Below are positions 9,321 through 59,592 of a stretch of 64,000 bases of DNA, one piece after another (positions within the stretch are counted from its first letter, which is position 1; each line of letters begins with the position of its first letter). Source of the stretch: Octopus sinensis (Eukaryota); contig NW_021836133.1 in NCBI RefSeq assembly GCF_006345805.1, forward strand, positions 1 to 64,000. Direction: 5' to 3'. The notes beneath the pieces are model-generated. The model had not been told where the DNA came from. It saw only the letters and a list, made by a program, of their open reading frames with translations, and did not search any database. The position numbers and the translations under genes are program-made.

Positions 9321-12300
9321 GGCTTTAGAGAAAATTTTAAAAATGATTATTGTTTATTGTCAATACCCTAACACATCAGCACATCTTCCTCCGTTTTATT
9401 GGTTACAACAGGCTCATTTAAAAATAGAGAGAATGTTATTTGTATTTTTTTATGACCAGGATAAAAAAGAAAATAGTTACTTTATATATAATCTATCCAA
9501 AAATAATAACAAGATTCTTCTATTCGTGTTTAAAATTATTTATAAGGTTTTTTGTTAATTTATTTTTATTAAAGTTCTAAATTTCTTCAAAAAGTAAAGT
9601 TTTTAAATTCTTTTTCTGAATTATATAATTTTATTGGAAATGCAGAAGAACCAATTGTACCACTTCAAATGAGAAGGTTTTGATATTTTTCAGAGAGTAA
9701 TTTTTAGATTTATTCATTAAACTGTTTAATTTCTAGATTTTATTTAAAAAATAAAATTCTTTAATAAGTTGATAATTAAAAAATCCTATCACATTTATTA
9801 AATAAAAAATTGAGATTTACAAATTAAACTCGACATCGATGATGGGAAAGTAGGTTGCTCAATCCCTAAACTTCAGAGAATTTTATCAATATCTTTTATG
9901 TCGGAAATATTATTTTATATTTAATAAAATAATAATGTAGATTGCACTTTTATATTCAAAAAGGGGAGACTCCACGAATCTTCCTCCCATCTTCTCTGTA
10001 AATCCTCTAATAAATACAATCCAACTCTTTTTGCTAATTAAATGGCTAAAAGGAATTTTTTATTTTATTTATTATGTCACCAAGACACGTTATAATGGAA
10101 CTAATTAATCTGTGATTATGTTGCACTTTGAAAGCGACCTCATCCTTGTTTGGTAATCTTCCTACGAGTCCACACAAAACCGTATCTGGCGGCTAATCGG
10201 TTTGCAGCATTTTTATGGACTTGGGAATTTTGTCTGGGATGGTTTGGTTCTATGGAAAGTATATCGTCCTGGTACGAGGATCTCCCATGGGTAGAGGTTC
10301 TTTTGATGTGGGTATTAGGTTCCTCCTGGGCGTTTCGAGATCCAACTGACTTGGTGGAGCAGATAAATCCACGCTAAATTAGTTGATTCAGGAATAAAAA
10401 GATTCCATTTTTCAACTGTATCATACCAAAAGGACTCATCGGTCTACGGCCAGGGAACGTTGACGAGATTTGATTCTAGCTGGAAAGTTGTTTCTTTTGC
10501 AATAAAACCAGACCAATTAAATCCAACTCGTGAAAGATTAGCAATCCAAAAGTTAAATAGACTTGAATATATCTTTATCAATCTTTACGACTCGATCACA
10601 TCATACGAAAAGGAATCCCACTCTTATTTCAGTTTAAAATTATAAATCTAAAATATGGATTTATTAGGTAATAACAAAGATTGTATAGCTTTGTAGGTCC
10701 TAAGAATGGGAAATAGATTTATTAAGTGCCTCTAAAGTTTATATCTCAAAAAAGTTAAAAGAAAACTACGAAACTTTAAACAAAATTTTTGTTTTAAAAA
10801 ATATCGAACTTGTAGAAAGGGCCTAATAAATTATCAAAAACTGAAAATCGTTATGAAATTTCGAATTTTGGAAATTCGGGTCATCTAATTTGAATTGGAT
10901 TCTTGAAAATCTTAAAAAGAAAAAACGAAACTTTAGCCAAAATTATTTTCTTAAAAAATCTTATGTAGTAAGAATTAGAAGTCAAAAAAATATCAAACTG
11001 GTTGAAAGACTCAGGTAGATTATTAAAAACTGAAAATCACAATAAAATCTCAAATTTCAAAATTATATTCTTTTATTTGGGTCATCTAATTTAAATTGCA
11101 TTCCTGAAAATCATTAAAAAACTGTTTTTTCATGTTTTTAATGAGCTATTTTTTTCAAAAAGAATAAAATATAATTTTTTGTGAGTTAATAACTAATTAT
11201 ATGATTCATTTGATCAATTTTTATTGTTTTTCCTATTTTAGTTCTTTTAAAGAATTCAGAAAATTCAACTGATATTTTAAAAATGTGAGCTATGTGTTAA
11301 TAATTTTAACAGTATATCTTTTTTCCTTCATTTATGTATTAGAGATATTGTCAAATCGTTTTAGGTGGTTATATTCGAAGAGAATTTGCTTAACTTGCTT
11401 TCGCAGTGGTTCTCTCGGGCAGTAGCATAGCACAAAAAAACTGATTCTTGTAGATTCGTTTTTGTTAAAGTTTTTTGCATTTCCTTTAGCATCCTTAGTT
11501 TTATGTCTAAGCAGGTTTAGATATTATATTTCCAAACAACATAATCTGTAGCCATGTGGGTTTTCTTCGACATAAAACCATTCCTGTCAAAATTTCACGA
11601 TTTAGATTTGGCAAGTGATGTATGTGAAGTGTTTAAACACTTTTTTTCTCTGAACTTGATCCTCATGTAAGACCATTTGTCTGGGTACTTTCTTTTCTTG
11701 ATGAAAGAGTACAGACTATTACTTGCCAACTTTCATATCTCCTCTTTGAGCCGTCTCCTGTTAAGCCCGCAAAGGTCTTTGTTGACTTTTTCCTGCTACT
11801 TTCCTCGTAGATTTCTTTGGATTGCTTAGAATCAATTGGATATTTTTAATCTGAGCACACAACTAAATGACAGTTCATTTATAAACCTCAACAGTTGACC
11901 CCACTACGCTCTTAATATTGGCAAGATTTTTCTGTAGAAAACTTCTGATTTTAATTCTCACCAATCAGAAATCATCTGCCACGGGCCTCCTCCCGAATTT
12001 TGCTTTGGCAACAATCACTATTTCCCAACTTAATGCGACTTTTCACAGTCATGTGCCTAAAAATAATATTAAATTTTTTTCAAACTATCATGATTCTTAT
12101 ACATGGATTTAAGAAATTTAAATTATATTATTATCGTTTAATTTATTAAATGGTAAACCTAAAAATTTATAAATTCACACTTTTAATTAATTATGACGAG
12201 TCGCACGTTCTTTTGTTGTTCTTATTTTGCTGCAAATATTAATTTTTTATTCATAATTATTATTATTTCTATTCAAGGACTTTATGCATATTGATATTTG

Positions 12301-14491
12301 CTCAGAACCTTCCATGAATTAAAAAAAATTGTTGGTTATGAGTTTGTTTTTACAATATTGTGATATGTATTATTCCTTAGTTTATGATTTAATAATATAT
12401 TATTTTATTCACTTTGATGACTTTTTTTGATGACCTAATTTTTTAAATTCCAATCGTCAAATCGATTCTAAATGTTATGTATAATTTTATTTTTCAGACA
12501 TTTTTTAATTTATTTTTCTATTTTTTTGAATCAACATTACTTAATGATTATTAATGTTTGCTATACTTTTATTCTATGCCGAATTTTCATTTCATAAAAT
12601 AAAACAGTTGTATTGTTTGATTTCCCAGTATTTATTTTTTGGCTTATCTGTTCTAAGTACAAATAAAGTAATATATTGTCAAATAATTTGAATTTAAATT
12701 TAATTGAAAACAATACTAAAATTGATTGTGTGGTACTTTTCAGAAATAGTTTCTGGAGCTTTACGCAGGATAGCGTAAGATAAGGCACAATTGGTGTATT
12801 CGTTTCTTGTCTTTTGTTTATTTCAACGAAGTATCTTTCGAGAAATTTTGCGATCAGCAAAAGAATAACATATACAATGAGTTCAAAAAAACCGGTTTTA
12901 TAATTTCTCCAATTTTTTTAAATTTGTAATTCTCGGAGAGTAAACTCGTATCCCTTTTTTTAATTATTTATTTTTTAAGAGATATTTTGAATTTAAATTT
13001 ACAACGCGCAAAAAATATATACAGAGAAATTCCTACAAAATGTGTTCTTTTGCTGCTGCAAGTCAGTGTCACCATTACTGTATTCACACGCACATTTGTT
13101 CTAAAGGAGTTTTGATTTTCGATTTGTGGATTTAATTCGTACTGAGTATATTCCTTGATGGTGAATTGCCACAATGTTTCATTTTATTCGTTGTTGAAAT
13201 TTTTCCTTATAACATTATAACAGTTAAATGAAATTAAAAAAATATTTATTTGACAAAAAGAAAGACATTAAATTCATTTGATTCCTATTAGGACACTGTT
13301 TTTCTTCAGGAACTGCGTTTATATATGGCACGATTGATATGTTTAACACTTCTGTCATGTCTTGCTAACAATATATCTTTTGGTTTAATTCCATTGTAAG
13401 TGAATTAACCCATCATATGCTTCTTCGGTGTTTGTGCTACGTTATCTCTGTGTAGTCGTTGTTGCAGTCGTTGCTTCCAAGGACCTCTTTGTTTGAATTT
13501 GTATTTATTTTTACACGTCTTTCGGAAAAGAAAATTAATGAAAAGGATAGTATCTCATTTGACCTTAATCATTATAATCATTATAATTATATATTTTTAC
13601 AGAGAATATTGCTTGATAAAGGATGGCGGCAGATGTTGCTTTTTATTTGTATTTGAAATAATTTGTATAACATTTAAATGAGATCAAAAATATTTATTTG
13701 ACGACAATAAAGATAGTTTTTTGAAAGATTATTGAAGTATCTTTGTCTAAATTAAAATTATCCCTATTTGTCGGTAACTTAATTTTGCTGCCAATGAAAA
13801 ACTGTTTCTACCAAAAGTTCACTGTTTACCGAATGCATCCAACGTCTGCATATTTAATACATGTACTTATTTTTGCAAGCAAAAATTTATTTTCACCAAC
13901 GTGTTTAAAAATATTTTGCTACAATAGAAACATTAATATTTGTTTAATGTTTTAATATAGAAATCGATTTTTGATCCAATATTTATGTTTATTAAAAATT
14001 TGTATTTTGCAAAAATCTTTACTACATCAATTTAAACGCATTTAAAGATGAATTCAGTTCTCTAACGCTGTAACGATCATATTTTGACAATAAAATGTTA
14101 TTTTGTTCACCAAAACTTAGTCATAAGCTAATTATTAAGTATTTTGAATAATTCACTCTATTGTCTCTTTCACAATATCTTCCAGCCAACAATGTATATT
14201 TCAATATTCTCATAGTAGGTTTACAACAGATTTTTTAGGGACAGTCTTCATTTCATAATTTGTTTTTCTAAAGAAACTGTGTCATTATCCTTACCGGGAA
14301 CAAAAAGAACTTGTTAAACATTTGGTATGGATTCATTACAGATCAATAAACTGCAACTCATGCTGACCGTAATGGCGAATAAAATGCTGTGAAATAAAGT
14401 TTTCATTAATTAAAACACCGGTTCTCAACCTTTTTAACTCGGGGCAATAAACAGTTCAGTTGCAAACCGGTGAAAATATTTTATTAAAGAA

Positions 14492-15315
14492 CAAGTCTGG
14501 GGATATCTTGAGCCAAATAGGGACCACCCTGTCCTCCACCAAGGAGTCACGTTCTTTGACCACCTATGGACTACTCAGGTGACAGTACACCGCCTGCAAG
14601 ACAGTCATCAAGTCCTCAGAAGTGGAGGAATCAGTCACATTAGAACATGATATATTGAAGACGATATAGTCCACCCTGTCCACAAATTGACGGAGACAGG
14701 TTATCAAGTCAGACTGAAGTGAGGAGGGCATTTCGTTGTTTTTGCAGACGTTGACTCCGACATATCCCTTCTCTACGGTAAACACAGGATGGCACTGTTT
14801 GGGTGGTGTGATTGTAGTCGATCGGCCAAAGCTTGAGCACCGTCGTTGGGGAGTCCGTATCTGAGTGACTCGTTATTTTTACCGGTTTATGACGGACTCG
14901 GACTTGGGGAGTCGAAATATCCTTGGTTTGGGGTTGCCGCGTTGAGGGAGGGGGGTCACACTCCCAACTTCCACAAAGGAAAACCCCCAGTTGAGAAGCC
15001 CGTCGATTGCCTCCCCGTTTTTGTCAAATCCTGCAGCCAATCCGAGAGGACTGTCAAATTGGGTACCCCACAGTGACAATTTCTGGTGATTGTGTGAATA
15101 TTGAGTACAAGCGTGTCCTTGGGAGTGCTCGAATGTAATAGTCCTGTGGAGGCTAATCGAATGGCCACTTTATGACTGGTCTCTGGCTCCAGTATTTTGC
15201 TCAAACAAGGCATTAGGAGTCCTCGGTAGAACTTTGGGTTGTTTGTGTAAATTCCATGAAGACAGAACATTCCGACAGCCCCTTCAAATACAAAAAGTAG
15301 GGATCTCTGTACCAT
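14492..15315 (-). pseudogene. DHODH: Class-2 dihydroorotate dehydrogenase, 5 exons, truncated after KISPDL
   Basis: [70 protein letters not shown] introns at 15083-15108, 14861-14882, 14773-14795 and 14564-14590 restore the frame. Homology stops at 14492. Confidence 0.9.
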
Positions 15316-15369
15316 CCGTAACTCACTAGAATATATAGTGAGAATAATATTGATTAGAATTAGTAAATG

Positions 15370-16002
15370 TTATTTATCTTGTGAATATGCTTGAATGGTT
15401 AGATAGGAGGCGGAGAGCATCATGAGGAGGAGTCCACAACAAATGGCAATGATTGTGGCAAGAGTGACCCCTCCATATTGTTTAACCAAATTCACCAACC
15501 TCCCCAGACACCCCACATTAGCATTCGACACATACAAATTGTGGTTTTCCGTGCATTCAGTCAGGAGGGTCTTGTCCTCCGTGGAACAACAACTGGCAGG
15601 CAAAATGGCAAGAGGGGAGTACCGGACAGTCCAGCTGGTGGTTTGGTTAAAGTCAGTGTAGTTCATTACTCCACAACATTTCAAATTGGACTGCAAAAAG
15701 TCCCAGGCCTTGGTGAAAATGTGAGAGGAGTCCCCCGTGTAGCGTTCTTGGAGACTATTTTGGAGAAAGTGTTTGATTTGAGCCACCACCTCGGTCTCGT
15801 AGACGGCCAGGAGGATAGTGGAGATGACCACAAACATTAAAATGACAAACAGCAATAAGGAATAGACGAGGAGGATCACTCGGCTGCCTTTGAGTGTCCC
15901 CAGAATGCCCAATAGACAGACCCCCGTGATGAAGAGGCCCACGGATATGAGGACGTAGGCGAATTGGGTGTACAGCATTTTTAGGTCTTTTAGGTCTTTC
16001 AC
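15370..16002 (-). CDS. Tetraspanin, open frame but lacking TM1
   Basis: TM2 and TM3, EC2 with CCG, PASCC and GC, then TM4. No first TM segment; the frame abuts hAT-derived sequence. Confidence 0.9.
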   Translation of the reverse strand: MKDLKDLKMLYTQFAYVLISVGLFITGVCLLGILGTLKGSRVILLVYSLLLFVILMFVVISTILLAVYETEVVAQIKHFLQNSLQERYTGDSSHIFTKAWDFLQSNLKCCGVMNYTDFNQTTSWTVRYSPLAILPASCCSTEDKTLLTECTENHNLYVSNANVGCLGRLVNLVKQYGGVTLATIIAICCGLLLMMLSASYLTIQAYSQDK

Positions 16003-16853
16003 ATTAATATGTTATAACAATGAATAAATTTAGAAGAAAATATCCATAAAAGTTGAATAAAGTGTTCATTAATCAATTTCAACACTTAGTTTGTATTTTC
16101 GTAAGTTTGCTGAAAACAGTTTCACATGCATATGTTGATCCGAAGTTCTTTAAAGAGCAAAGCAAACAACCTCTGCCTTGAATAAATGAAGAATTATGTT
16201 TTTGTTGTTACAAAAGGTTTCATCGTTTTCCTTTACTTTTTGAAGTCTGTCAGTTAATCAGTAAAGTTCTAAATGGTACACAAACATTTCAATTTTTATT
16301 ATAGAAAACATATGGGTTTTGAATTTTCGAGAAATTAATATTTTTTAAAGTTACTGCATTTGATTGGGTTTCCTTTTTGTATTTCCAAAAATTTAGAGCT
16401 AAAATACTAAAAAATAGTTTGTAATTAAATAGCCAAACAACTTTTAATAAAAATATAAGAAATATTTTTTTAAGAAAAGTCAAATAATATTTTAAGAAAA
16501 AATCATCACAAAATATTTTATGTCGTCAAGGAAATGTTAAACTCACTGTGATGATTAAAGATTATGAAAACAACAACATTTTAAATGACCAAATACATGT
16601 ATTTTCCATAACGTAAAACTTAACAGGGAACTTTAAAATCTTTTTTAGTGAGAAATAGATTTAAAAAGTTAAGAAAAAAATATGAAGAATTATTTTACGA
16701 AATAGGAGGAAATTCAAATTACATGATCCAATGGGGCCAAAATTGCTTATCAACTCCAAAAATAATTTTAAATTCACAAGAACCAATTAATCAAATTGTT
16801 AATTCTAAAAAGACAGAAAATGTTAATTTTGAAGAAACGGCAGTTATATCAAA

Positions 16854-17797
16854 CTAGCTCAGCAGTTCGCTTCGCTCACTGCGAGCTAGCTCCTGCGGAG
16901 GCCCTGCTCGCTACGCTCGCAGTTTCCTTAAATAAGTATAAATTTATGTAGATATATAAATGCGACCTGCTTTGATATAACCTTATTCTAAGGCCTGTGG
17001 ATAAACGATGTTTGCAGTCCGTCCATCCTTGGCAAATATAAATAAATTTTCTCTTCTACCTACCCTTGAGCACCCCACATACAGCTGGCCATGTGAAAAG
17101 CACTCGTTCTCTAAAAATAAGCCTACTACCTTTAAAGACTGTCCCTGGGCCTTGTTTATTGTCATAGCAAAACTTATCTTCAGCGGAAATTGTAGTCTCT
17201 TAAATCTAAAAGGTAATTCTTCCGAAATCAGAGGTATTCGTGGGATATAAACATCCTCACCTCTGTAATTACCTGTTAATATTGTCGCTTCTATTACGTT
17301 AGCCATCAAATTCTTGATAACCAACCTTGTACCATTGCATAATTTAGGTGGCGCAAGATTGCGGAGTAACACAACCGGTACACCTATTTTTAATTTCAAT
17401 AGATGATTCGGCATTCCAGATGGATCTAAGGAATTTAACACCATACCATTTTATTATTAAGAGCTCGAAGGTTTTGGGGGACCACACCATGTGAGTCGAG
17501 GACTTTCTTATTGTTCATTTTAACAAAAACGCAGAAAATAATTTGTTTTTAATTTTTTGACTTGAAGGTTTTGGGGGACCTCATCGTCGAGGATATTCTT
17601 TCTTATTAAATTTTTTGACAGGAAGGTTCTTAGAGGATATCAACCTTTTATTGTGCCTCATTATCGAATAACTACAAAAGGGAAGGTTTTGACAATTTGA
17701 TCTGGTTTGTAACAATTTGAATGTGGGTGTGCACAGACAGACAGACAGACACACAGACAGACAGACAGACACACACCATACCATTTTATTATTAAGA
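16854..17797 (-). mobile_element. Internally deleted Helitron with PIF1-helicase C-terminus (16983-17444)
   Basis: 5' TC at 17797 preceded by A; 3' hairpins plus CTAG at 16854 followed by T. Helicase motifs [15 protein letters not shown] and [31 protein letters not shown]. (GTCT)n microsatellite at 17732-17772. Confidence 0.92.
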
Positions 17798-56064: not shown

Positions 56065-59000
56065 GTGGTGTCGTGTATGTCTGTTTTCACCAGTCTGCAA
56101 GCAAATCCTGAGGGCTCTCTTACAAAAGATATTAGAGATAACCGACAACTATTGGTAAGAAGCAAGTCTTCGGGGCTACATGATCCCCATGAAATTTGTG
56201 GAAACTCTCCTACCGAACATGTCTCACCCCATCTAATCCCTCTTAAATCGGTGATCGGTGAGGAACACTCTAACGACAAAGTCAAATGGATTTCTGGTGT
56301 TGTGGAGTCGGCGAAGAGACGATTTGGCAGAATTCCTCGTGGAGGATGGAGACTTATTGCCGAATGTTTCAACGTCCGCTTTCTCACTCAAAAGAGTGTC
56401 TCTGATGTGAAAAACTTACTGAATGTAAAGCCCTGCTCTAATGGCTGTGGCAGTCGAAATAATGTGGATACCTCAGATTACTTATTGCCAAAGACAGAAA
56501 TCTCCATTTATGGTAAATGCAAGGAAGAGTTTAATCTCCAAATTCAGGAACTTAAATCAATCCCACGAAATGCGAGAATGCCCACAAAGAAGATTCCGTA
56601 TAAATTGCTAAAGACTGATGTTCTTGTCGCAATTAATGCAGTGATTTCGAACTATATATTATCTTCTCCGCCTGCAAGCATAAATGAAATCACGGATATA
56701 ATTTATGCCGGGCAATGCTCATATGAAAACATTACGAGGCAACCCCTAACAAAAATCACATGGCTTGAGGATACGGAAAGAAAGATTTCCAAACTTAGAG
56801 AAAATCTAACTTTCGTTAATAAGTTTAATGGCCAGCAATCTAAAGACGAAAAAGAGAAGACACTGAACATTTTATGCTCGTTTGGATACAAAAAATCCAG
56901 GAAGGGAGAGCTGGCACGCGTATCTAGTCTTATTGAAGATAGAGTCAAAATTATGGAGAAAAAAATCTCAACCTATCGCTCCAGAAAGTCGTTTAGACAA
57001 GATAATTTCTGTTTTGAACTAAACAGGAGAAGATTCTATCGAAGACTGAACTGTGAAAACAAAGATTCTGATTGTCAAGTCCCAGAGGATAAGTGTCTAT
57101 CTTTCTGGAAGGGCGTATGGAAGAAAGAGGAGAACCGTACTCCTAAAGCTATTGTTGGTAAGCATATTACTGGAGCTGAACAGCTTCCAAGTGACGTGAA
57201 AACTGATTTTATCAAGAATGTTATCCAGTGTGTACCCAATTGGAAAGCCGCGGGTTGTGACGGAGTTTATGGATTTTTTATCAAAAAGTTCGAAGCTCTT
57301 CATGGCCATTTGTGCGATGAGATCCTTAAAATTGTGAACGGAGGCTATTCCCCTGCTGAGTGGTTTTACACAGGAGTAACATACCTCATTCCAAAAAATG
57401 AAAAGTGCCATTCCCCAAATGACTTAAGGCCGATTACCTGCATGCCTATATTGTACAAACTTGTCACTAAATGTGTGAATACAAAGCTTACAGACTATAT
57501 CGAAGCGTTTAACCTTATCTCGGATAATCAGCTGGGAGCTAGAAGGCAATGCCAAGGCGCAAAGGAACAAGCACTAATAAACCAGTGTGTCAATAGTGAG
57601 TATGGAAATAACTTATTTGCAACGTGGATCGATGTCAGAAAGGCATTTGATTCTGTCAATCATGAATTCTTATGTCAAGTGCTTGATCAGTCTGGAATTC
57701 CGAATTGGATCACAAATTTTGTGAAAACTTTAATCAAAAATTGGAATGTCATTTTGACACTTAACAATAAGAGAATTGGAACTGTAAAATTGGAAAGAGG
57801 AATCTTACAAGGAGACTCACTCTCTCCACAACTCTTCACTCTGGTAATGGATCCGTTAAGTAGGAGCTTGAATATGAAGTTCCCGAAGGTGCGTATAGGT
57901 CAAAATGACCCGTTCACGGTTTCATATTCAACAAACCATTTGTTGTTTATTGACGACCTGAAAATAATTGCTGAGAAAGAAGACACCGTTCTAAAAATGA
58001 TGGAAGATGTCGATGAATATTTTGATGCCGTTGGCCTCAAGAGGAACTCGGAAAAGTCTGCGACTAACCTGGACTATGTGAAAGATACAAAATGTCTGGA
58101 TGGGTGTGCTGGGTATCGATACCTGGGAGTCTTGGAGGATAGAGGAAGTGATGTCAAGAAAATCGAGGTAATGAAAACAATTGCTCGAAACGTGAAAGAG
58201 AGAATCGAGAGTCTTGCAAAAACAAAGTTAAGTGCAGTAAACCTCTTTAAAGCGATAAACGAATATGCACTCTCTCTCTACAACTACTATATCGGATTGA
58301 TCGACATTGAACCGAGTGAGTTTGATGCCATTGATCTGGTAATTCGTCGCATTCTAACTACTTTACGAATCCATCTGAAGCCCGCTAATAAAGAAAGATT
58401 ATATCTCGGCAGAAATGGTTTTGGAAGAGGCTTAATCTCAATTTCCAATAAGAGCGAATGCATCCTGCTCCAATTTCTCTCCGACCTTGAAAGAAAAGCC
58501 TCGTTGTGCCTCAGAAGAGCAGGAATCTTGCGGGTCTTGAGAGAAAAGAAAACACATATGACCACGATTGCAAGATTTCTCGCTCTCAAGTACAATCTGG
58601 AAGACCAATCAAAATTGGATGTAAACCTTATTAAGGAGTGCCAGAAGAAAAGACTAATGGACACCATTAAATCTAAGATGATACATTCAACGCTGTTTAA
58701 ATGCATTCAGGAACCGAGTGCTGATATCGTGGAGTCCAATGTATGGCTAGCCAATGGGAACAATGGCCCAAAGGCCGAGGCACTATATTGCTTGGCCCAG
58801 GATCGCAATTTGTTTTTCGGAGAGGCAAAGCCTAATTGTAACCATTGCGGCTCGGCAAGAAAAACCGTGGATCACCTAGCTACTCGATGTAGCAGAATGC
58901 TTCACGGGTCATACATGCGAAGACACAATGAAATTGTCAGATGCATACATCTACACGTCTGTCGTCAGTACGGAATAAAGAAATGCAAGAAATTGAAAGC

Positions 59001-59592
59001 ACACTCAGTCCAGTCGGTCGTGGAAAATAGTCGTGTTGAAATACGAGTAGACATGACGTTGCAGACCGACATTGAAGTTAAAAACAACAAGCCAGACATT
59101 TTCGTGCTTGATAAAATGAAAAATGAGATAACGATAATCGAAGTCGGGGTCACATCCCAGGACAGGTTAAAGCAAGTCGAAGTAGAGAAACTCCACAAGT
59201 ATGATCTACTTGCTGGAGAATTGGCACAGATTCACAAGGCAAAAGTCACGATAGTCCCTGTCGTATTGACATGGGATGGGGTAGTGACCAAGTTCTATAA
59301 GTCCTACATGAAAAAGTTGAATATAGAGGTCCCGACTAAGGCGTACATTCAATCAGTGACAATCAAGAAAACCCTGGAGAGCATGGTCGTTGAATACAAA
59401 CATGGCATGAAGGTCGACAACTACCAAATTGAGAAGGAAACGGATAGTCTTATCGCTAGAGGAGAAGAACTGGGAGTGTCAGTTGACTTGCCAGAGGAGT
59501 CTGCTTTCTTACTGCAATACGAAGAGGAGAGGTGTCAAGACATGACCGGTCAACGGAGTAGTTCCCCTAAGAGAAGAGAGAATATCAATTAA
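56065..59592 (+). mobile_element. Intact single-ORF R4/Dong-like non-LTR retrotransposon (Myb-like, RT, CCHC, RLE)
   Basis: 1175-aa uninterrupted ORF: W..VV..GGWRLIAECFN..SDVK (Myb-like), NWKAAG.DG, LRPITC, DVRKAFDSV, QGDSLSP, FIDD, YRYLG, CNHC..H..C, RHN, KPD..IEV..K..KY. Confidence 0.95.

Follow-up and report, generated by a model that had tools for sequence, protein, structure and literature searches.

The 64,000-nt stretch of DNA analysed here (the window), taken from an unplaced contig of the Octopus sinensis assembly, carries at positions 14492–15315 of its minus strand a truncated copy of a gene for dihydroorotate dehydrogenase (DHODH). The window contig belongs to Dicyema, a dicyemid mesozoan inhabiting the octopus renal sac, whose genome was co-assembled with that of its host and occupies unplaced contigs of this Octopus vulgaris-complex assembly. 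The copy has no function: it duplicates part of a parent DHODH gene on another Dicyema contig (C9480), is truncated, and is decaying as a pseudogene fragment. We consider it fairly probable that the observations as a whole are explained by a dead Dicyema duplicate and an intact, animal-type parent in which a suite of active-site changes centred on Ser to Cys arose convergently.

From a start ATG at 15315, the DHODH frame of the window is continuous only once four GT-AG introns of 22–27 nt are spliced out. By spliced translation and homology to the C9480 gene, the five exons (15315–15109, 15082–14883, 14860–14796, 14772–14591, and 14563–14492, all on the minus strand) correspond to exons 1–4 and the first 72 nt of exon 5. 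Intron 1 (15083–15108, 26 nt, phase 0) restores the frame and agrees in position and phase with intron 1 of octopus DHODH; intron 2 (14861–14882, 22 nt, phase 2) falls within the Arg codon of NRYG; intron 3 (14773–14795, 23 nt) is in phase 1; and intron 4 (14564–14590, 27 nt, phase 0) contains an in-frame TAG. The DHODH models, like those of Pax6 and UMPS discussed below, were checked by hand; the automatic tiny-intron splicer over-extends in AT-rich DNA. The spliced product comprises 242 amino acids of DHODH, ending in KISPDL (14509–14492), followed by 11 unrelated residues and a stop codon at 14458–14456. It represents the N-terminal two-thirds of a class 2 DHODH, with nothing beyond KISPDL. 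The C-terminal third of the TIM barrel (NTT, GGLSG, and GVGG) is missing, and the window copy therefore cannot be an enzyme. A preliminary description of this DNA had already called the copy truncated, and that statement, its coordinates, and the peptides that it quoted were all borne out: the peptides lie on the minus strand, and homology to the parent breaks exactly at 14491/14492. Translation of the window also yields EPETSHKVA (15189–15163) and PKPRIFRL (14932–14909), and alignment with the DHODHs of octopus and other animals identifies an N-terminal hydrophobic segment (LLFVFEGAVGMFCLHGIY; 15247–15300, residues 6–23) as an animal-type membrane anchor.

Two substrate-site motifs had been described as class 1A-like, and both are read in the window. 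NRYGLPNDG (14887–14839), which is split by the 22-nt intron 2, stands in place of the canonical class 2 motif NRYGFNSxG, and NISCSNV (14656–14636) has a TGT Cys codon (14647–14645) at the position of the catalytic Ser. The window, the allelic haplotig C2705, and C9480 with its full-length copy are independent contigs, and as all three have the identical TGT, the Cys codon is not a sequencing error. The next residue, Ser, is found only in the window copy and its allele, the parent reading NISCPNV. The preliminary description had reasoned that a functional copy with SSPNT and GFNS would reduce these changes to decay after duplication. The intact copy on C9480 has Cys and GLPN, and since it carries both, they are not products of decay.

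The duplicated block as a whole spans 14491–15989 and matches C9480:71598–73096 with 98% identity over 1505 nt. Besides the DHODH piece, it holds a 55-nt spacer and, at 15370–15989 on the minus strand, the 3′ portion of a tetraspanin gene that lacks introns and is present in full (265 amino acids) on C9480. The same block with the same ends occurs on C2705 (98.8% identity to the window over 20 kb). A paralogous segment on C12471 is 95–96% identical to both flanks (window 12168–14491 and 16222–16853) and is without the block, having 147 nt where the window has 1730 nt. The right junction of the block bears a TTAGGTCTT duplication. Since the introns are kept and the paralogous site is empty, the block was inserted at the DNA level. 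We propose that a genomic piece of 1.5 kb, extending from the 3′ part of the tetraspanin gene to DHODH exon 5, was copied with its introns into another Dicyema locus, and that the window copy later gained the Pro-to-Ser change in its motif together with changes at other conserved sites. In the DHODH exons, window and parent differ by six non-synonymous (G11E, R49K, L50V, A191V, L196F, and P201S) and five synonymous substitutions, with one further difference at an intron site; A191V, L196F, and P201S hit conserved residues, and Pro201 is invariant in 50 sequences. Retained introns, truncation, an empty paralogous site, and altered conserved residues are the tests for an unprocessed duplicated pseudogene, and the window copy shows all four. 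It resembles such fragments in keeping its introns and intergenic spacer, in being cut at both ends, and in the empty site of its paralog, and it is unusual only in the tiny introns typical of dicyemids. The introns and spacer rule out a processed pseudogene.

The assembly (2.72 Gb in 13,516 contigs) contains two eukaryotes, as seen from a comparison of RPB2, transposable elements, Pax6, and host COI. The RPB2 domain extends exon by exon over tens of kb on the chromosome-scale contigs C2, C9, and C22, and a compact RPB2 with in-frame stops is found on the unplaced contigs C9300, C6303, and C8851. The compact Pax6 gene of C9061, spliced by hand, matches its Dicyema acuticephalum counterpart with 94% identity (811 bits, 92% coverage), the next matches reaching at most ~59% identity at comparable coverage, and the genome that the preliminary description had called parasite-like can thereby be named as that of Dicyema. 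In the host, the mitochondrial COI (C13516) agrees with an Octopus vulgaris record at 100% identity. On the Dicyema contigs (C9061, C9300, C6303, C9480, and C8697), introns are ~25 nt long, genes are compact, transposable elements form young families of their own, and haplotigs diverge by ~1.2%. Among animals, only D. japonicum and myxobolid myxozoans are known to have introns shorter than 30 nt (PMC13644364), and the D. japonicum genome has 49% repeats, including long interspersed nuclear elements (LINEs), 36.7% GC, and 1.24% heterozygosity (PMC6736024). These published features fit the window. A myxozoan source was ruled out by the 94% identity of Pax6 to Dicyema and by the octopus host.

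The parent gene (C9480:71138–72422) is intact and encodes 378 amino acids, with six introns of 22–27 nt, all GT-AG. Its product, which contains NRYGLPNDG and NISCPNV, passes the class 2 models (TIGR01036, 333 bits with a cut-off of 200; NF003652, 331 with a cut-off of 267) and fails the class 1 models (NF002702, 90.6 bits with a cut-off of 301; TIGR01037, 106 with a cut-off of 270). Compared with solved structures, it gives E values of 1e-91 to 1e-88 for rat and human DHODH, 2e-72 for the Schistosoma mansoni enzyme, and 2e-58 for that of E. coli; class 1A structures reach only ~1e-15 (1e-14 to 1e-16). The class 2 N-terminal region and scaffold that the preliminary description had recognized are thus confirmed. 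In the alignment with the rat enzyme, Cys200 falls on the catalytic Ser (vnvsspn). An N-terminal extension is present, in which ETSH(R/K) and PKPRIFRL align with animal enzymes and residues 6–23 form a hydrophobic segment, and the alignment indicates that His48 and Arg123 of the quinone tunnel are kept. The ligands of flavin mononucleotide (FMN) and orotate that we checked are likewise kept: the Lys of AAGFDK, GSVTP, the Asn of NRYG, GVN, N197, N202, K237 (the Lys of KI(A/S)PD), NTT, GGLSG, GVGG, and YT. Judged by its sequence, the parent is a membrane-anchored, mitochondrial-type class 2 DHODH.

The class 2 hallmark of a Ser base in N(V/I)SSPNT with a Thr partner is absent, Cys and Val standing in its place in both copies. 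The Dicyema protein is otherwise like the canonical animal class 2 enzymes (human 1D3G, rat 1UUM, S. mansoni 6UY4, and octopus C18): it matches rat at 1e-91 and octopus with 45% identity, and it has the membrane anchor, quinone-tunnel His and Arg, FMN/orotate ligands, and exon-intron structure in common with them. Its best database matches are only ~45% identical. It differs from these enzymes in having Cys for Ser, Val for Thr218, Leu for F149, and Pro-Asn for N150-S151, and in having lost G220-L221-R222 and Q225 (human numbering approximate). Class 1A DHODHs are cytosolic and fumarate-dependent. Those of Lactococcus lactis (DHODA) and trypanosomatids resemble the Dicyema protein in the local motifs GLPN and N(L/I)SCPNV and in the Cys base, a likeness at the motif level only. 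Over the whole protein, membership in class 1A is contradicted by the low class 1 scores and by the N-terminal anchor, class 1A being without an N-terminal membrane/quinone domain. The combination of a class 2 scaffold with Cys at the base position is that of a Cys-type class 2 DHODH.

The host has a DHODH gene of its own (C18:26813385–26849083). The part modelled comprises eight coding exons with introns of 2–7 kb, and the motifs are the canonical NRYGFNSDG and NISSPNTPGLR. Exon 2 of this gene is tandemly duplicated (C18:26845055–26845252 and 26842252–26842443); AAGFDK has become AVRFDK in the second copy, which is probably a dead exon copy.

An intron map was read on the pairwise alignment of the Dicyema and octopus proteins, which are 45% identical. 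The Dicyema introns lie at 74/0, 140/2, 165/1, 229/0, 271/0, and 374/2 (column/phase), and those of octopus at 74/0, 140/2, 165/1, 229/0, 269/0, 321/1, and 374/2. Five of the six Dicyema introns thus occupy the same column in the same phase as in octopus; the remaining one, next to a gap of two residues, is displaced by two codons. This map is decisive in showing that the parent descends from the DHODH gene of an animal.

Together, the altered residues make up a suite that is also seen in other Cys-type class 2 enzymes. Conserved columns, in which 90% or more of 51 Ser-type sequences agree, number 88; in 14 of these the Dicyema protein deviates: F139L, N140P, G167C, Y180L, S200C, T203V, G205D, L206S, R207S, loss of the following Gln, P291A, G309R, G315A, and K328R. 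A core clade of Cys-type sequences deviates at 11 columns, nine of which are also altered in Dicyema (hypergeometric P = 1.7e-7), and four of these nine carry the identical derived residue (L, C, V, and R). In class 2 enzymes, the Thr three residues downstream of the catalytic Ser relays the proton from it together with a water molecule; class 1 enzymes have a Cys base, and Val at the Thr position. This Thr is lost in all Cys-type sequences of our set save four alphaproteobacteria-affiliated ones. Such a pattern in the alignment argues for a coordinated change of the acid-base machinery and against drift.

The clade defined by NVSCPNV with NR(Y/F)GLNS accounted for 6 of 120 database matches, and a profile search of 1.8 billion representatives returned more. 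Its named members are Batrachochytrium salamandrivorans (KAH9247229.1), Smittium simulii (PVU89987.1), Blastocystis (KAK8797142.1), a member of the Pelagophyceae (KAJ1447538.1), and the diatom Rhizosolenia setigera; its proteins include P0040, P0048, P0068, P0078, P0106, P0113, P0121, P0123–P0149, P0183, and P0218, and two members sit in bacterial gene neighbourhoods. Taken broadly, the clade covers stramenopiles, chytrids, Harpellales, and some bacteria, with ~11 conserved columns co-varying, and the Ser-type protein of Roseospira goensis looks like an intermediate state. Dicyema has the same suite (F to L, S to C, T to V, the GLR..Q loop, and K to R). It differs from the clade in its animal N-terminal domain and animal intron positions, in GSVTP and GPP where the clade has GGVTP and GPG, in P-N instead of N-S after GL, and in its shorter loop, and membership by descent is not supported. 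We read the active-site change in Dicyema as convergence, with an independent origin within animals. The preliminary description had offered convergence or chimerism. The first gains support from the suite shared with other Cys-type enzymes; the second does not survive, the introns, the N-terminal domain, and scattered signature residues all being animal-type. A chimera of N- and C-terminal halves was likewise ruled out, in that the whole length matches class 2 and the class 1-like letters are confined to two loops.

A Ser base has been treated as a hallmark of class 2 and a Cys base as a hallmark of class 1. To our knowledge, the few reported exceptions to the Ser-base rule are fungi from oxygen-poor niches. 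Cys-type class 2 DHODHs were described in fungi in 2021 (PMC8520639), and the clade reported here extends to stramenopiles, chytrids, and some bacteria. In yeast, pyrimidine prototrophy under anaerobic conditions and independent of respiration is conferred by the fungal enzymes of Sch. japonicus, D. bruxellensis, and Anaeromyces, and SjUra9 loses this ability when C265S is introduced; ArUra9 used free FMN or flavin adenine dinucleotide (FAD), not fumarate, in extracts, and anaerobic yeast growth dependent on DbUra9 selected fumarase mutations (PMC8520639). The fungal enzymes (SjUra9, DbUra9, and ArUra9, and those of Coemansia, Smittium, and Gonapodya) are like the Dicyema protein in having Cys for the catalytic Ser on a class 2 scaffold, and SjUra9 and DbUra9 also keep the membrane/quinone N-terminus and quinone-site residues, as Dicyema does (PMC8520639). 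In contrast to them, the Dicyema form has an independent origin and its changes go further (GLPN, Thr to Val, and deletion of the PGLRxLQ loop), and whereas the fungal enzymes have been shown to sustain anaerobic pyrimidine prototrophy in yeast (PMC8520639), the Dicyema enzyme is known from its sequence.

These comparisons suggest a model for the parent enzyme. Its active site has been remodelled by replacement of the catalytic Ser with Cys, of the relay Thr with Val, and of the Phe in NRYGF with Leu, and by loss and shortening of the PGLRxLQ loop, changes that converge on two states: that of Cys-type class 2 enzymes, found in stramenopiles, in zoosporic and gut fungi, and in some bacteria, and that of the class 1A motifs GLPN and NxSCPNV. 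Cys200 would act as the catalytic base of an enzyme that is probably anchored in the mitochondrial inner membrane and in which FMN/orotate binding and the N-terminal quinone tunnel (His48 and Arg123) are predicted to be retained. By analogy with the fungal Cys-type enzymes, dihydroorotate oxidation may depend less on oxygen-linked respiration. The oxidant could be quinone, for which the tunnel is kept, fumarate, for which the pocket looks class 1A-like, or a flavin. A link to reduced respiration, as the preliminary description had suggested, or to fumarate use is a hypothesis drawn by analogy from the fungal Cys-type enzymes (PMC8520639). A wider scenario, in which the convergent rebuilding of the active site made the oxygen-linked quinone pool dispensable and fumarate, free flavin, or a low-potential quinone took its place, seems to us doubtful; in it, as the decarboxylase half of the Dicyema UMPS appears catalytically dead (see below), the enzyme might even have exchanged its step in pyrimidine synthesis for a redox role.

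Several points weigh against the explanation favoured here. Splicing of both the window and the parent gene is predicted from frame restoration and homology, and a database search found no DHODH orthologues from other dicyemids. Anaerobic function of the fungal enzymes did not require Cys in ArUra9 (C168S), and in KmUra9 introducing it (S263C) was not enough (PMC8520639); our literature searches on dicyemid habitat found no statement that the renal sac is oxygen-poor. An IQ-TREE analysis of all columns (LG+C20) placed the Dicyema protein within a 26-row Cys clade (support 92/96). Finally, a UMPS-like gene on the parent's contig (C9480:96893–98400, plus strand; a hand-spliced model), found by hand from a PRT-like match 25 kb from DHODH, has an OPRT half that looks intact and a decarboxylase half in which both catalytic lysines are replaced (DDRRLADIG for animal EDRKFADIG and MIILSSL for LLKTHVD). 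As no other UMPS-like gene was readable on Dicyema contigs, DHODH may no longer serve UMP synthesis; if the last step of the pathway really is dead, it may have another role.

The IQ-TREE placement bears on whether the Dicyema gene belongs to the Cys clade by descent, either through lateral transfer from a protist, fungus, or bacterium or as a retained ancient paralogue. FastTree agreed with it, recovering the protein in a 21-row, almost wholly Cys-type set (support 95), and the nine shared columns with their four identical residues point the same way. However, the tree sister of the Dicyema protein, P0267, is a long branch from a prokaryote-like contig, and a grouping with animals survived the approximately unbiased (AU) test (p = 0.52), the tree constrained to it being slightly better, by 2.1 lnL. 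With the 36 motif positions dropped, the protein joined the animals, with weak support (SH-aLRT 75). Columns that separate the two groups are animal-type outside the motifs (G92, S110, and P348) and clade-type only inside them (L139, C200, and V203), and the N-terminal domain is animal-type (IYxxNxKFY..LMP), without the 4-residue insertion and YW motif of the Cys clade. By a rough estimate, five of six introns identical to octopus would arise by chance with a probability of ~1e-10, and a bacterial donor would have brought no introns. We therefore regard descent within the Cys clade as very unlikely: given the animal-type introns, N-terminal domain, and signature residues, the AU test, and the motif-free tree, the parent gene appears on all these counts to be inherited vertically from an animal DHODH gene and to be neither a transfer nor a chimera. 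An artefact is scarcely credible, whether the contig was misassembled, the Cys codon misread, or the gene an octopus pseudogene. The contig is indeed unplaced and repeat-rich, and haplotig C2705 has single-base indels. Against this stand the TGT common to three contigs, the separate canonical multi-exon gene of octopus, the four window and six parent introns, all GT-AG and frame-restoring, and flanks and transposable element families that are those of the Dicyema contig set.

Two further alternatives accept the parent as a Dicyema gene and differ over what it does. In one, Cys protonates fumarate in the orotate pocket, and fumarate or free flavin replaces quinone, as in class 1A. GLPN and NISCPNV are nearly identical to NSMGLPN and NLSCPNV of that class, Thr to Val removes the class 2 proton relay as in class 1, and a Batrachochytrium member of the Cys clade is labelled 'DHODH (fumarate)' in one source, an annotation with no assay; the fumarase mutations selected with DbUra9 and the use of free FMN or FAD by ArUra9 (PMC8520639) lean toward the same chemistry. 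We nevertheless think it unlikely, as the Dicyema protein has retained both its membrane anchor and the His and Arg of the quinone tunnel, and as extracts with ArUra9 showed no use of fumarate (PMC8520639). In the other, Dicyema salvages pyrimidines from host urine, its de novo pathway decays, and DHODH drifts or is repurposed as a redox enzyme. The state of the UMPS-like gene, which reaches only 27.2 bits with PF00215 (cut-off 27), would fit such relaxed constraint, as would the several DHODH fragments scattered as pseudogenes and a genome scan with the Pfam OMP-decarboxylase family, which returned host matches only and no other match on Dicyema contigs. However, the UMPS gene was spliced by hand, C9061 has two further PRT-like loci that lie outside the comparison, and an ATCase-type gene is present on C6303. 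The DHODH frame is intact over 378 codons and six introns with the checked FMN/orotate ligands kept, and the deviations are limited to 14 of 88 conserved columns, nine coinciding with the Cys-clade suite in a way not expected under random drift. The non-random suite and the kept ligands still argue against simple decay of DHODH, and relaxed constraint strikes us as improbable.

Under the explanation that we favour, an animal-type parent with a convergent Cys suite, the Dicyema gene is possibly the first animal case of a Cys-type class 2 DHODH. Ser is present in all 19 named animal sequences of the trees, and a literature search found no animal case of such an enzyme and no paper linking dicyemids with DHODH. 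About ten residues change together, and the same suite occurs in independent lineages, which provides natural replicates on the Ser/Thr-water relay versus Cys and on which electron acceptor goes with each active-site state. The octopus reference assembly holds a sizeable Dicyema genome on its unplaced contigs, and users of those contigs should be aware of it.

Other features of the window include a LINE-type retrotransposon with an intact 1175-amino acid ORF (56065–59592, plus strand). It has at least 12 copies at ~100% identity on other Dicyema contigs and was therefore active very recently. A Helitron-like repeat piece (PIF1-type helicase; 16854–17796), an insertion relative to the C12471 paralog, has more than 35 copies at 99–100% identity, two of them on the Pax6 contig C9061. 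All scored copies of both elements lie on unplaced contigs, among them C9300, C6303, and C9061.

The preliminary description had also mentioned a dead mitochondrial-type ArgRS; neither PF00750 (catalytic core) nor the Dicyema ArgRS of C9497 as a query found a match in the window. On C8697, fragments of the DHODH 3′ end (87%), tetraspanin (91%), and ArgRS lie within ~17 kb (511960–513239 and 528575–528727), a region that looks like a collector of gene fragments. A dicyemid COI minicircle, considered as a marker, was not found among the COX1 matches in the assembly. These matches included a second full-length COX1 (C1425:413645–414982), with a score equal to that of the mitochondrial contig, and the octopus chromosome-scale contigs contain numerous mitochondrial COX1 fragments.

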